NCBI RefSeq assembly: GCF_006345805.1
Contig: NC_043011.1
Location: forward strand, 65,856,464 to 65,920,463
Source of the DNA: Octopus sinensis
Taxonomy: Eukaryota
Reading direction: 5' to 3'
DNA length: 64,000 bases
Part shown: piece after piece, positions 3,253-56,527 of the stretch
Layout of the letters: each line of letters begins with the position of its first letter
Numbering within the stretch: the stretch's first letter is position 1
Program-made: the position numbers and the translations under genes
The notes under the pieces: generated by a model
Seen by the model: only the letters and a program-made list of their open reading frames with translations
What the model was told of the DNA's origin: nothing
Databases searched by the model: none

Positions 3253-4965
3253 GGGATACTATATCTTCATTATATGCTTTAGTCCTAAAGTTAACCATGA
3301 GTGTTATGATGCCTTAGATAAAAGTCACTATTGCTCGGTAAGTTATTTCGTATTACTGCTATATATTGTAAATAATAATCTTTAATTTCTTTCTGATACT
3401 TTGCTCTGGCTTAAAGGTGAATTTTCTCAATAATGAACGCTTTTCTCAATTCATGACAATACAGTTCTTTGTAATTTTTTGACCCTACACATAATCTTAT
3501 AGTGATTCTAGAGTTGAATTAATATCCAGGCAATTGTTTGGGCAACAGGGTGCTGTTTGACTCTGTTTAAAAGCTAAATTTAATGCACGAATTTATTTGA
3601 AGCCACAGATGTGTTTCTGAATTCAAATTCATTAAGAAATATTTTACTGTTGATAAAGTCTTCATAGATTATCAATAATAGAGGCATGGATGTTCACATT
3701 TTTCATAGACATGCCATGGTATCACTCGTAAAGTGACTTCACATGGCAAAATTATTTGACTGTTACATCGGAGATTTGGGAACGATTATAATGCTGCACA
3801 TCCGGCAACATAATAATTACCATTATATTTCTTATAGAAAACAGCAAATTTGTAAAAAAAAAGCTTTTTCATATCATCAGATTTAATCCACCAAAACACG
3901 AAAAACATGTGAAGAGTAATTGTTTATTCCTTATAATCATTAATCACACAGAGTGCATTAACGACATTCTGTATAACAATGTTACATTGATAGAATTCAT
4001 ATCTACTTCTATGAAATGTAGTTGTAAAAATACGTTGAATGACTTTGTGCGGTTCTTTTCAATTTCATGATTCTTGTCTTTTCTTTTCAGCCTCGAAATA
4101 AGCAAAATATGTTACGTACTACCAAAGTTCCTACTCCTTCGGTAATTCCTGCTTTACCCACGATACGTTTTCCTTTTATCCTCAGTATTTGTTTATTCAA
4201 TAATTCCCGGTAACAAAATTATAACTTTTAGAATAAACACTTATTGTTATGCAGATTCATTATATATTTTGCAATAACTGATTTGCGGTAAGATAACATT
4301 GAAAATATGTAGATCATTTGATTATTATAAATATTATATATCCTTTACAAATCTTTGATTTGTAGTGATGATACTGAATCGCCATCGGAAATGTGATATA
4401 ACTGCGATAATAATACTTTAGTATTGCGAATATACTTATGAATATATCAGCGTCCTTAAATATTAATGAGAAATCACTTTATCTGCAGCTACCTGCTCTG
4501 CTTTATAGGGTTAGTAGAAACTCAATCTGTCTAACTCAATTTATCACAATATTTGGTAAATGTGTTTCTCTTTATAACCAGTAAGATTCGACAGGGCGTG
4601 AGAAAATGACTGAAATTATATCCCGCTACAGAAGGATTCCATCTCTAGTCTCATATCAATCCTACCAACCAAGGTCCGCTCTGAAGTGTCACCGCTGTCC
4701 CACTGTTAACCTTTGAAACCGTTGTTTAGATTCTGTCCCTGGCTCCCCTATATGCTGTAATAATTTTCCTGCGTAATCACAATAGAAATGCTGAAAAGAA
4801 ATGATATATATACAAGGGAAATCATTCCATTTTTAACCTCATTATTAGTTGCAATATTGATGTTTGATAGTATTGTTTTGCCTATTCTCTTCACAGTCGT
4901 CTTTCCAACCGTCTGCAGCTATTACTACAATGGCGTCTACATTATTATTGCACGACTACATTTAG
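3253..4965 (+). CDS. G1: 3' exons of a small 6-Cys secreted/GPI-like protein (5' exons lie upstream of the window)
   Basis: Exon 3253-3337 (85 nt, ttttctag|...|gtaagt, phase 2 to 0) = GYYIFIICFSPKVNHECYDALDKSHYCS, homologous to G3 exon 3. Candidate stalk exons 4091-4141 (PRNKQNMLRTTKVPTPS) and 4489-4509 (LPALLYR). Last exon 4897-4965 SSFQPSAAITTMASTLLLHDYI*, homologous to the G3 last exon. Stalk exons are less certain. Confidence 0.8.
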
Positions 4966-5424
4966 AAAATGTTGGAATCTACCTGCATCATGTTGGCAAT
5001 TGTCTTGATAATTTAGTCTAATATGTCTGAAATATGTTAATAAACTTGAGAAGACTATACCCAATGATTATACGTTTACATTTCTTTTAATTTTTTTAAA
5101 CCTCGATAATCCTAGATTTACAGTTGGAATATTTGAAAATACTGCTTTTGATACCAATTTGTATGTTTATCATGCATTGTTAGTGGTAGTCATTTGTAAT
5201 ATATGCAAAAGGATTGAAATTATGGGCAAAGAAGTTAGTCGATTGATGAAAGTATTCTTATTTTATAGAACTGGAGTGATGAAACACAAAATTAACCGAT
5301 GTGGGGAGTGAAATCGATATGCAAACACGTACGACATATCGCTAACATGTTGTCCGGCTTCATAGGTTTTCCTGCATCTCACCACCTTGATATATATTGA
5401 TGTCGCAAATTATTATTATAGCTT

Positions 5425-5565
5425 AGATAGACAGACAGACAGGGAAACATACATATAGATAGATAGATAGATAGATAGATAGATAGATAGATAGATAGAT
5501 AGATAGATAGATAGATAGATAGATAGATAGATAGATAGATAGATAGGTAGAGAGATAGATAGATA
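5425..5565 (+). repeat. (GATA)n microsatellite
   Basis: Direct reading. Confidence 0.95.
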
Positions 5566-6439
5566 AATAAGTTCAGCAACAATTTAGATTCAAATGAATA
5601 TGGTACTTAATTTAGATGCACCAACATTTTATATGGTGTCATCCATAAAACTTTGCAATGTGATTATAATAAAAAATAAGCAACAAGAATGACTCCGGTA
5701 ATTTGGTACAATTGTTTCGGACTACAACATTATATTAAAAGTTGTAATTATACAGCAGAGTTAAAATTTTGAGTGCTCTCATATAGGTTTTCCAATAATA
5801 CAAAAGCTTTTAAATCAAGTCGTAACATTTTAGGGAAGGTAGATATACAGATAAAGATGTAGGATTAAATTTTAAGAACATTAGGTTGTGAAGTCCAGTC
5901 CCTAACTGACCAAACTATGCTTGTGTTTAACAAGGAGTGAGAGTAAGGGGGGCGTCAGAATACCATAAAAGGAACTCAAGTTGCCACTAACAAAATGCCA
6001 ATTACTGCTATATGGTGAGAAGAAACTAGGTCAGTGTCAAAAGGTCATTTATCTCATTTACAAACAGTAGGGGAAGAAAAAACTATCAATCATTATTATG
6101 AGAAGACATTGAATTTTATAATTGGGGGATAGCTTTATTAATTTTGAAATTAGATTAGATTTAGAAAAAATTCAATTTCAAGTTTGCAGTGAAGTTTTTT
6201 AGTCCTCTATGAAAGTTAAGTTGAAGGCTACTATAGTATTTTTCTTATAGTATTTTTCTAATATTAAAATATAGGAATACTCATATTTTTTATTTAAAGT
6301 ATTTAAACTTTCTAGTTGGGGAATGTATGCAACATTATCCAAACTCCAGACGATTATTCAAAAGACTTATATTACACTGATGTTTTAAAATTTCATAGGT
6401 TTCCATAGAACAAAGTTGGCAACCTTCTCTACTATTTCG

Positions 6440-53989: not shown

Positions 53990-54625
53990 AACACCGAGTG
54001 GCTGGATGGATTCTGAGGACATTTAAAACCAGAAAAGGGGGAAACCCTGCCACTTCTCTGAAGTACTTTCGTTCTCAGCCTCCTGGATTACAGCTCCCAA
54101 ATATGGTTCCAGCGACTGTGAAACAAACCCTGGAAGTCGAAGCAATGAAGCCCCAATACACAAAGAATATTATCTCTATGCAAAAGATGGGCTGGTGGGA
54201 GAGGCTAAAGGAGCCGAGTCGCTTTCCCTTGCAGGGGAACGGATAAAGATATGCGGTGATATATGTTTGGGGGATCTTAGAGGATCTAGCTCACAATTTC
54301 GGAATTGACATCTATAGCATCGTGCCACACATCTCGTCTTTCCCATCCAAAATATGGATACTACTGCAATTGCCTGTATTTCAAGGGCCCGCAAATGTTC
54401 AACATCCTGACAGGCAACCTTAGAGATATGCATGGCGTTCATGTGGATGTCATCAACGAATGTCTGAACGGGTCTCTATCTGAGATACCAGATGAACCCA
54501 CATCGCGGTAGGAGAAGCAAAGAAGAGTAGCTACGTCCACCTATCTACTTCTTCAAAAACAATACCAGAAATAACGCCAAGTGATAACAGGTTCTGCACC
54601 AGCATGACCCCAGCCTTCCACTGAA
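53990..54625 (+). mobile_element. Decayed CR1/L2-group LINE 3' end
   Basis: GWILRTFKTR, WERLK, KGPQMFNIL; homologous to 15425-15868. Confidence 0.75.
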
Positions 54626-54756
54626 ACCAGTGCAGGATAAGACATAAAGATAAACTAGTATAATTATAAGCAAAACATGTGTTACATTATAATTAACTAT
54701 TTACAATGCAGTTCTGTGAGTTACCTGCCAAGCATAAGACTTCGAATTACTGTGAC

Positions 54757-56527
54757 ATGGGCATGAGGAAATTTGCTGCAATTATTTTCGTTCTAGTGTT
54801 AGGTAAGTAGATCTAATAATTATTGTCATCGATATTTATCTCTCAATTTTAAATTCATGCCTCTCTCATTATCCTGCCATCCATGTTTATGTACGTGTAT
54901 ATATATATATATATATATATATATATATATATATATTATACATATAAATATATATGTGTGTATACATACGTGTGCATATATACATATACATATATATATA
55001 TATATATATATATATATACATATATATACATATATATATATATTTATATATATATATATATATATATATATATATTTATATATGTATATATATTTAAATA
55101 TATATATATATATATATATATATATATATATATATATATATATACAGATAGATATATATATATATATATAGATAGATAGATAGATAGATAGATAGATAGT
55201 TAGATAGATAGATAGATAGATAGATAGATAGATAGATAGATAGATAGAAAGAGTTTGCATGCATTCATTTATCTACGAAGGAATTTATTGATGTCTGTAA
55301 ATGTCTATATACATGTGTCTATAAGAATGTGAGTATACATCTTCACAGATATAAATTCTTCAATTCTTCTACTACTCACCACTAAGCTGTTCGTTGAAGT
55401 AACTTAATGTAGATTCCCCATTACCTAATTCAGCTCAATTTTACTCCCCTTACCTTCTTTCTATATTTCATTTGTTTATTGTCTCTCTCCCTTTCTTTTC
55501 TCTCATCCTCTTTTCGGTTTGACCTCACAAACATTCCCAATGTTTAAGTCACTTACAAAAAAAAAACCCTCGATCGAATAACACCGTTTACAAAACGCCA
55601 TGCTTGGAATGCCCAATTATAAACACCTTTGGAACTGACACACAAGGTGCAAGAAACTAATACATACACCATTCTGCTTAAAAAAGGAAACTGCAGATAC
55701 ATTATCCTAACATATCTCACGTTTGTTTTCATTCTTCCACTTCACTCTGTATTTCATATCTTCTCTAAAATAATTATTAATTAAACATTTTCTCGCACCG
55801 TCTCTGATGAAGGGATATATATATAATATCCCATATACAGCTGTAAAATTTCTTTATAAATGTTTTGTAAACTATTTACAGCCTTGGATTTTTTATCTCA
55901 TTCTGTTAACTTTTATAGATAGACATGCTAATACACGGCCTACGTTGGACACGCAATCCGTATCATTATGGACCCAGGAGCTTAATTATAGTTTGTCCAT
56001 AACACTTGCTCATCAGTACCTGACACCTTTGGGTCTTCTTGACACCAATACCTCTGATACTCTTGGTAGAGAGATAGCAAGATAGATTGATAAATAAATC
56101 GATCGAAAGATACATAGGTATAATATATTTTCAGGGGGAAACAAACGTGATTGGAGATATAAAGAAGTATATTAGAGTCATAATTATAAAAAATATACAA
56201 ATTTGCAGGAAATAAGATTTCATATCCTTCTCATGTCCATTAAAAACAACTGTTATGTCATAAATATAGTTTTCCATATATATAAAGCGAAATATTTCTC
56301 TTTCACTCAAATAGGAAGTTACGATAATTAGACGGTTCATATGATTTAGTAATCGATAAAATTTCAGATATAATTTCTATATTATGACATGTATAAAATA
56401 TAAAGTGATTGTTGTTTCAATTCATAGATGTAACCAAAACGTACGTTGGAAAGGTTTGCATCGACATGGCAAAACGAACTTGTCCTGAATCGTATGAGCT
56501 ATTTACAAACGCGTCTGCACGCTGCAA
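54757..56527 (+). CDS. G4: exons 1-2 of a 6-Cys secreted protein paralogue (remaining exons probably beyond the window)
   Basis: 54757-54802 [15 protein letters not shown]|gtaagt; 56428-56527 [34 protein letters not shown]|gtaagt; phases 1 and 2 as in G2 and G3. Confidence 0.82.

Follow-up and report, generated by a model that had tools for sequence, protein, structure and literature searches.

A small-gene array with six-cysteine domains

The DNA analysed here, which we call the window, is a stretch of 64,000 nucleotides from Octopus sinensis (NC_043011.1, positions 65,856,464 to 65,920,463 of the forward strand). It holds part of a head-to-tail array of very small genes from a lineage-restricted family whose products carry six invariant cysteines. 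Three gene types (DA, B and C) and one relic (E) are found, all on the plus strand. Gene C (39713-50472) is the sole complete copy, while 'A' (3253-4965) and 'D' (54763-56527) are the 3' half and the 5' half of two copies of gene type DA, ~96% identical and each cut by a window edge. A preliminary description of this DNA had counted four paralogues. The array itself is borne out but the count is not: since A and D are halves of one gene type, the window holds three distinct types plus the relic. Both DA copies are contained in a higher-order tandem repeat of ~62 kb, and nucleotide self-comparison gives 96.4% identity between positions 2-2018 and 61984-64000.

The genes follow a plan of five exons, which is seen in C and DA and also in gene LOC128249931 of Octopus bimaculoides. 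Exon 1 (40-46 nucleotides, ending in phase 1 at a GTAAGT donor) provides the start codon and the hydrophobic core of a signal peptide. By inspection, the four signal exons encode a methionine, one to three polar or basic residues and then 10-12 hydrophobic residues; ~130 nucleotides of upstream sequence are common to them. Exons 2 (94-100 nucleotides, phase 1 to 2) and 3 (85-88 nucleotides, phase 2 to 0) are the short cysteine exons, each with a polypyrimidine/AG acceptor and a GTAAGT-type donor, and together they encode a domain of ~60 residues with the six invariant cysteines. Exon 4 is a short variable linker (phase 0 to 0). Exon 5 encodes a tail of 20-22 residues, including a hydrophobic stretch of 12-14 residues, and is completed by a stop codon and AATAAA. 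The latter two exons were revealed by collinear nucleotide similarity and by alignment of the regions downstream of A and C; the preliminary description mentioned neither these exons nor the orphan signal exon E and the in-frame stop in gene B described below. The units are small genes in their own right: a start, a signal exon, a stop and a poly(A) signal are present in each.

The cysteine spacing C-x7-C-P-x10-12-C-x8-C-x7-8-C-x9-11-C was read directly from the sequence and is exact in every copy in the window, just as had been proposed, and the exons, phases and positions given earlier are all present on the plus strand with canonical splice sites. A six-frame search for the first motif (C-x7-C-P-x10-12-C) yields three occurrences, at 33167, 43116 and 56457, all on the plus strand, against a mean of 0.09 and a maximum of 1 in 100 Markov-1 simulations. 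The second motif (C-x7-8-C-x9-11-C) is located at 3275, 34968 and 44369. Profile scans of both window strands show no further copy of the cysteine exons. Independent support for the junctions comes from two sources: the exon 1/2, 2/3 and 3/4 joins are identical in the O. vulgaris model CAI9735849.1, and the exon phases are identical in the O. bimaculoides RefSeq gene LOC128249931.

In gene C the signal exon (39713-39752, phase 1) is recognised together with its conserved upstream sequence by nucleotide similarity (blastn) of 39608-39799 to 54658-54849. The cysteine exons 2 (43087-43180, 94 nucleotides, phase 1 to 2) and 3 (44347-44431, 85 nucleotides, phase 2 to 0) were placed by motif and splice sites; both occur in CAI9735849.1, exon 2 exactly. 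A linker micro-exon of 18 nucleotides (45416-45433) encodes DIGLPK, the peptide that follows exon 3 in CAI9735849.1. The terminal exon with its TAA (50410-50472) was found by alignment with that of A, and AATAAA/ATTAAA stands at 50558.

Gene type DA has to be assembled from its two copies. The signal exon of D (54763-54802, phase 1, with a further in-frame ATG at 54757) was identified by alignment and is used in CAI9735849.1, and its cysteine exon 2 (56428-56527, 100 nucleotides, phase 1 to 2) by motif search and splice sites. Exon 3 is available from A (3253-3337, 85 nucleotides, phase 2 to 0, acceptor tttctag, donor GTAAGT); it encodes GYYIFIICFSPKVNHECYDALDKSHYCS, matches exon 3 of C in tblastn (E 1.5e-7) and is likewise used in CAI9735849.1. 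The linker exon of A (4091-4141, 51 nucleotides, phase 0 to 0) encodes PRNKQNMLRTTKVPTPS and is placed by its splice sites, by the peptide after exon 3 in CAI9735849.1 and by a position homologous to exon 4 of C and LOC128249931. The terminal exon (4897-4965), found by alignment with that of C, reads SSFQPSAAITTMASTLLLHDYI followed by TAG, with AATAAA at 5039. The poly(A) signals thus lie 74 (A) and 86 (C) nucleotides past the stop codon. In the O. vulgaris counterpart of D on OX597831.1, an A-type exon 3 lies ~8 kb beyond the D-type exon 2, after a long interspersed nuclear element (LINE); this gene order places exons 3-5 of D just past the end of the window. Two blocks in intron 4 of DA (4579-4650 and 4722-4776) match blocks in intron 4 of C (45952-46024 and 46093-46150) and are 74-77% conserved. 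The first block starts with CAG/TAAG, so that an alternative 3' exon at this position could end translation immediately, yielding a secreted form that has no tail.

Gene B comprises a signal exon (31945/31954-31990, MRKMKCLIFVLLLNI, phase 1, placed by alignment and splice site) and two cysteine exons found by motif search and splice sites: exon 2 (33144-33237, 94 nucleotides, phase 1 to 2, encoding AAVSMSHCNLMAIQRCPASYYGYNNNDAFC) and exon 3 (34946-35033, 88 nucleotides). The latter reads YFK, an in-frame TAA (34956-34958) and then PNSCYRLISEKCTLYFKTIKEKMCS, or C-R-Y-F-K-TAA-P-N-S-C around the stop. Both B copies of the O. vulgaris reference have GAA (Glu) here, a single G-to-T difference; the TAA may reflect a null allele, a difference between species or an error in sequencing. 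Searches downstream of B revealed neither a linker nor a tail exon.

The relic E is an orphan signal exon (9417-9456, MSKHSLFILILIF, phase 1) with a weakened donor GTAATT and a conserved 5' flank; its DNA aligns with the regions around the signal exons of B, C and D. No counterpart of exon 2 or exon 3 turned up for it in the profile scan of 9457-31900, and E occurs twice in the O. vulgaris locus. It sits between two inverted arms of 263 bp that are 97% identical (8805-9067 and 11523-11261), so that the remaining exons may have been separated from it by a transposon or a local rearrangement.

The family in Octopus vulgaris and Octopus bimaculoides

An exhaustive profile search (HMMER) was run with a mature-domain alignment of C, D+A and exon 2 of B against 1.84 billion representative proteins. 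It returned five matches, the best of which (5e-78) is CAI9735849.1, a 'hypothetical predicted protein [Octopus vulgaris]' of 302 amino acids. This is a model of the window's own locus in the O. vulgaris reference assembly: it spans 89 kb (10001-99175) of a region, L001 (OX597831.1:18069714-18178888), that is collinear with the window and 96-98.8% identical to it, with 0-3 differing positions in each exon. A word-index protein search with the spliced C protein gave no match; this is a limit of the word index, because the exhaustive search did find the model of the locus.

CAI9735849.1 consists of a DA-type exon 2, exons 2-4 of C exactly, and then D exon 1 and exon 2 with an A-type exon 3 and the A linker. 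It thereby joins parts of at least three family genes, including transposon-derived pieces, skips one A-type exon 3, reads exon 4 of A out of frame (LEISKICYVLPKFLLLR) and ends in ...ASKSSTVE. The model is an artefactual fusion, an annotation error.

The higher-order repeat of L001 measures ~62-75 kb and has the order DA, E, B, C, DA, E. In its unit 0 (7025-20215) exons 2-5 of the DA type come directly after a C-type signal exon, which corresponds to a deletion of 12.6 kb relative to window positions 42465-55075. The resulting hybrid gene would be in frame because all signal exons end in phase 1; alternatively, it may be an assembly artefact. The next unit shows an in-frame deletion of three nucleotides in the C signal exon.

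Three genes of O. bimaculoides belong to the same family, with invariant cysteines, signal peptide, hydrophobic tail and tandem arrangement in common. They are LOC128249941 (proteins P0003, isoform X2, and P0007, X1), LOC128249931 (P0005, X2, and P0006, X1) and LOC128249942 (P0008, X2), all labelled 'uncharacterized protein'. P0003 and P0005 were matched by the profile (3e-6 and 1e-3), whereas P0008 was found by a later word-index search. The RefSeq models are separate genes of 108-124 amino acids. In LOC128249931, the one in which the five-exon plan and its phases were checked exon by exon, the linker exon has 27 nucleotides and the tail exon reads ISLQAVFLHSLVVQLLMQK followed by a stop. At least seven copies lie head to tail on chromosome CM046618.1 (two stretches, 45 kb, ~60 kb apart). 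The preliminary description called these genes hidden. A cluster of small exons indeed exists, but it is not wholly hidden: family members are already in the databases, as a fused hypothetical model in O. vulgaris and as uncharacterized proteins in O. bimaculoides. A literature search found nothing on LOC128249931, LOC128249941, LOC128249942 or CAI9735849.1, nor on octopus six-cysteine or GPI (glycosylphosphatidylinositol) families. The family seems confined to octopuses.

Two further candidates were rejected. P0002, a sushi-repeat protein (2.5e-9), is a repeat-inflated cysteine match to profile positions 11-35 only. P0004 (5.3e-6) is a tandem-repeat read-through open reading frame in which 14 profile positions are matched five times. 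Its source, positions 10001-10990 of L003 (a eukaryotic contig of ENA ERZ26273219), has a reading frame of 329 amino acids with five 62-residue units containing FAPNVNNLCYDWLL, similar to the beginning of exon 3 in the family; we judged this likeness to be a repeat-inflated chance match.

Sequence divergence within the family is large. When eight members from two octopus species are aligned, the six cysteines are the only invariant residues and identity ranges from 14 to 61%, in line with the earlier remark that residues between the cysteines are highly divergent. Less strictly shared are an A-K/E pair within C1-x7-C2, a G-Y-K that precedes C4, and C-F-x-P at C4 itself. Between species identity is only 19-30%, and there are no clear one-to-one orthologues in the parts sampled. 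Among the window paralogues the proportion of non-synonymous differences (pN) is 0.39-0.62 and synonymous sites are saturated, so that the ratio of non-synonymous to synonymous divergence (dN/dS) is unusable for them. At the nucleotide level the cysteine exons stand near the shuffled baseline (z 0.4-1.9), compared with z 2-4 for the signal exon, the introns adjoining the cysteine exons and the tail exon; divergence in the exons of the mature domain has thus been no slower than in the non-coding DNA beside them. Three younger copies of O. bimaculoides give a dN/dS of 0.67-0.80 over the whole domain, invariant cysteines included, and their dN of 0.25-0.44 is similar to their intron divergence of 0.30-0.48. 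These values could reflect either diversifying selection acting at some of the sites or a relaxation of constraint around the fixed scaffold. Overall, diversifying selection on the family is suggested. Birth and death of genes, which had been proposed for the array, is directly visible in four features: a nonsense allele (B), an orphan exon (E), the ~62 kb segmental duplication and the hybrid gene of L001.

The window is AT-rich (~34-35% GC outside transposon blocks) and contains many microsatellites and LINE fragments. The ~62 kb repeat is marked by a LINE with endonuclease and reverse transcriptase in intron 2 of DA (61984-64000, plus strand), identified by the self-comparison, by Pfam Exo_endo_phos_2 and by collinearity with L001; the LINE at the window start (1-2960, plus strand) likewise lies within intron 2 of a DA copy. 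Further LINE copies with endonuclease and reverse-transcriptase remnants occur at 9936-11172 (plus strand) and at 57888-60306 (minus strand). Intron 4 of gene C carries a transposon insertion of ~4.2 kb with two open reading frames of 427 and 232 amino acids (48260-50290, minus strand). Neither of them matches Pfam or is on record in the assembly collection, and they presumably represent an uncharacterized transposon. GC-rich blocks at 16000-20000 and 23000-28000 (43-48% GC) contain remnants of reverse transcriptase and zf-RVT; one of them is flanked by inverted repeats of 85-90% identity (12565-13077 versus 20476-19746), and a direct duplication of 870 bp is found at 23048-23913 and 26829-27630. 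Two inverted repeat pairs that are 94-97% identical (51370-51715 versus 53080-52735, and 43554-43738 versus 44199-44014 in intron 2 of C) are probably terminal repeats of small DNA transposons.

Predicted fold, tail and comparison with known families

An AlphaFold2 model of the mature domain of C, built on an alignment of five sequences, has a predicted local distance difference test score (pLDDT) of 83.5 and a predicted template modelling score (pTM) of 0.64; it supersedes a three-sequence model with a pLDDT of 73. Helices are predicted at residues 2-17, 19-25, 30-39 and 46-55. Helices 1, 3 and 4 contain the cysteines or have them at their ends, in pairs spaced 7-9 residues apart. Judging from this model, the domain presumably consists of four short helices held by three disulfides. 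No counterpart of the predicted four-helix fold was found in the PDB, and profile searches of all PDB sequences gave no match.

Pfam searches with eight members gave no match to the UPAR_LY6, GDNF, DUF19, PBP_GOBP, insulin or LTP models even at E<=10, and no similarity to toxin, antimicrobial peptide (AMP) or pheromone families. The six-cysteine family is real and matches no described protein family or solved fold. Its description as unassigned thus withstands the Pfam (DUF19, GDNF/GAS1) and AlphaFold/Foldseek comparisons, and so does the statement that its pattern departs from Ly6/uPAR, insulin and odorant-binding spacing. As a kind, small proteins on a disulfide frame, secreted or anchored and encoded in tandem, are already familiar.

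Ly6/uPAR proteins (CD59, Lynx1, SLURPs and insect Ly6) are precursors of ~100 amino acids with a signal exon, a cysteine-rich domain and a GPI-signal exon; they exist in anchored and secreted forms, lie in tandem clusters and diverge fast on a fixed disulfide frame. In outline the octopus family would work alike. Ly6/uPAR domains (PF00021), however, have 8-10 cysteines, an all-beta three-finger fold and a C-terminal CCxxxxCN, whereas the octopus domain has six cysteines, none of them adjacent, and is predicted to be all-helical. The GDNF domain (PF02351), found in the GPI-anchored GFR-alpha and GAS1, and the nematode DUF19 domain (PF01579) are also helical, disulfide-rich and extracellular, but they are larger and have about 10-12 cysteines (DUF19 about 12 in ~150 amino acids) against six here. 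Insect odorant-binding proteins have six cysteines in a six-helix domain of ~120 amino acids, with C2-x3-C3 and C5-x8-C6, a spacing different from that of the octopus family. Insulin-like peptides combine a B-chain cysteine pair with CC-x3-C-x8-C in the A chain; no adjacent cysteines occur in the octopus domain.

CHCH (twin Cx9C) proteins have two C-x9-C helices with two disulfides and are imported into the mitochondrial intermembrane space without a signal peptide. Helices 3 and 4 of the octopus domain carry C-x8-C and C-x9-C, but the likeness is one of helix-hairpin stapling only: one of the eight members reaches E 0.19 with PF16860, far below threshold, and all have a signal peptide for the endoplasmic reticulum. 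Aplysia attractin and the Euplotes pheromones are secreted, fast-diverging recognition signals with domains of ~40-60 residues made of short, cysteine-stapled helices. They differ in cysteine spacing, have no GPI-type tail and show no detectable sequence similarity, and none of them appeared in the Foldseek searches of the PDB. Plant LTPG proteins (8-cysteine motif) likewise place a compact four-helix disulfide-stapled domain on a GPI anchor, but their eight cysteines include CC and CxC, and as they come from an unrelated kingdom the likeness is an analogy only. The Mytilus MgCRP-I peptides, encoded in multigene arrays, have a conserved signal region, a hypervariable mature region and six invariant cysteines (PMC4558851). 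The evolutionary mode of MgCRP-I and the conotoxin superfamilies is the same as that of the octopus family, although those peptides are soluble, mostly beta or knotted and have pro-regions, against a helical prediction, a tail exon and no pro-region here.

Hydrophobic runs of 12-14 residues lie at or near the C-terminus in C, DA, P0006 and P0008. The window genes end in PA or HDYI and have no basic stop-transfer; P0008 ends in ...PISTILTALVVILFKKN, and P0007 has the same FKKN within a longer tail. Tailed forms are annotated as X1, the longest isoform, of LOC128249931 and LOC128249941 and as X2 of LOC128249942, and a tail-less isoform as X2 of LOC128249931 (P0005, ending in ...SSVKPFA). Transmembrane helices are ~18-21 residues long. 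The tail is too short to span a membrane and would most likely be a GPI-attachment signal. Candidate omega sites, by inspection, are S/SS at the exon 4/5 join of DA and N/MA in P0008. The label 'GPI-like' given in the preliminary description is thus supported by a terminal exon with a short hydrophobic tail, and we give GPI attachment of the family proteins an even chance.

A proposed tethered or shed binding module and its alternatives

In our reading, with a rough probability of 0.6, the array encodes helical binding proteins of a lineage-restricted and fast-diverging family, which are shed or held by a GPI-type tether. The gene family as such is the firmest part, and we hold it to be very likely; the role as a recognition ligand is a guess, and so are the venom, gamete-recognition, chemosensory and immune roles that the preliminary description listed. 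The precursor would enter the secretory pathway through the endoplasmic reticulum, where three disulfides would lock the helices. Processing of the GPI-type tail would leave a helical knot of ~60-70 residues tethered on the outer cell surface, and alternative 3' exons (as in LOC128249931 X2) may give soluble, tail-less forms. The module would then act as a small extracellular binding or recognition unit in which the cysteines hold the scaffold while helix surfaces and loops change quickly, and copy number would turn over by unequal crossing-over.

Several points weigh against this reading. It is built from genomic sequence, gene models and a predicted structure, and the O. bimaculoides family proteins are on record only from the genome itself. 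The tails are at the short, weak end of the range of GPI signals. Gene C offers only D-S-A with almost no spacer and no clean omega/omega+2 pair of small residues before the spacer, and the FKKN ends of two O. bimaculoides tails would also fit a minimal membrane anchor. The dN/dS values are high yet below 1, which leaves room for relaxed constraint. Foldseek searches against the PDB (twice) and the viral structures of BFVD returned only noise with E>5, but Foldseek is insensitive for helical domains of 59 residues. Given this insensitivity and a search limited to the PDB and BFVD, the absence of a known fold is provisional.

The alternative that survives best takes the proteins for secreted effectors that are purely soluble, for example components of saliva or venom, antimicrobials or water-borne pheromones, with the last exon as a removed propeptide or an annotation choice. 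The annotated tail-less ends of P0005 and CAI9735849.1 agree with this, as do the conserved intron 4 blocks with their potential immediate stop, and the evolutionary mode is that of mollusc toxins and peptides of the MgCRP-I type (PMC4558851). Yet the hydrophobic tail exon is conserved together with stop and AATAAA in DA and C, the tail recurs in LOC128249931, LOC128249941 (X1) and LOC128249942 (X2), and the Pfam searches revealed no likeness to the families concerned. We therefore consider purely soluble effectors unlikely, though worth keeping in view.

A minimal transmembrane anchor, making the products type I proteins with almost no cytoplasmic part, would account for P0008 and P0007, in which a hydrophobic run is followed by basic residues as in a stop-transfer. 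It is improbable, as runs of 12-14 residues are too short for a stable bilayer span and the tails of the window genes lack such an ending.

Somewhat more doubtful still is the idea that the array consists mostly of decaying pseudogenes or annotation noise and that the cysteine pattern is a fading remnant. Gene B has a nonsense codon and no linker or tail exon that could be found, E is a lone signal exon, and both the O. bimaculoides dN/dS and the near saturation of synonymous and non-synonymous sites among the window copies could be taken as signs of decay. Against this, C and DA (in two assemblies), like at least five O. bimaculoides copies, have retained all six cysteines, all splice sites and all phases despite 40-85% divergence elsewhere. 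Moreover, window and reference exons are nearly identical, and the stop in B is a single substitution absent from both reference copies.

The fused model in GenBank/UniProt, which would make the units parts of a single long multi-domain gene, can practically be dismissed: every unit brings a start codon, a signal peptide, a stop and a poly(A) signal of its own, the model skips and misreads exons of A and takes in transposon-rich DNA, and the O. bimaculoides models are separate.

Within the reading of tethered or shed binding proteins a more specific version can be formulated: a new disulfide-stapled helical fold from octopods that is under diversifying selection and serves, GPI-tethered or shed, as a ligand for recognition or modulation. 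Such a ligand might be a helical counterpart in function of the Ly6 'prototoxins', with the expanded set of nicotinic-receptor-like chemotactile receptors in the suckers as its target, or part of a gamete or egg-coat recognition set. Taken together, this version and its example roles are a long shot. A further idea, that the family could be the egg-derived sperm attractant Octo-SAP, is presumption on our part; the literature search gave nothing relevant.

Cephalopod genomes are known for many lineage-specific genes without an assigned role, and the six-cysteine array is a clean and compact example. Its scaffold and gene plan are both defined, arrays are present in two species, and genes can be seen directly to arise, fuse and die. 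The analysis also exposes an error in the O. vulgaris reference, where one 89-kb 'gene' is really several tiny genes. Short-exon families of this type are systematically overlooked by scans based on open reading frames. Should expression prove restricted to suckers, skin, salivary gland, gonad or haemocytes, the family would offer a tractable handle on an octopus-specific system of surface recognition.

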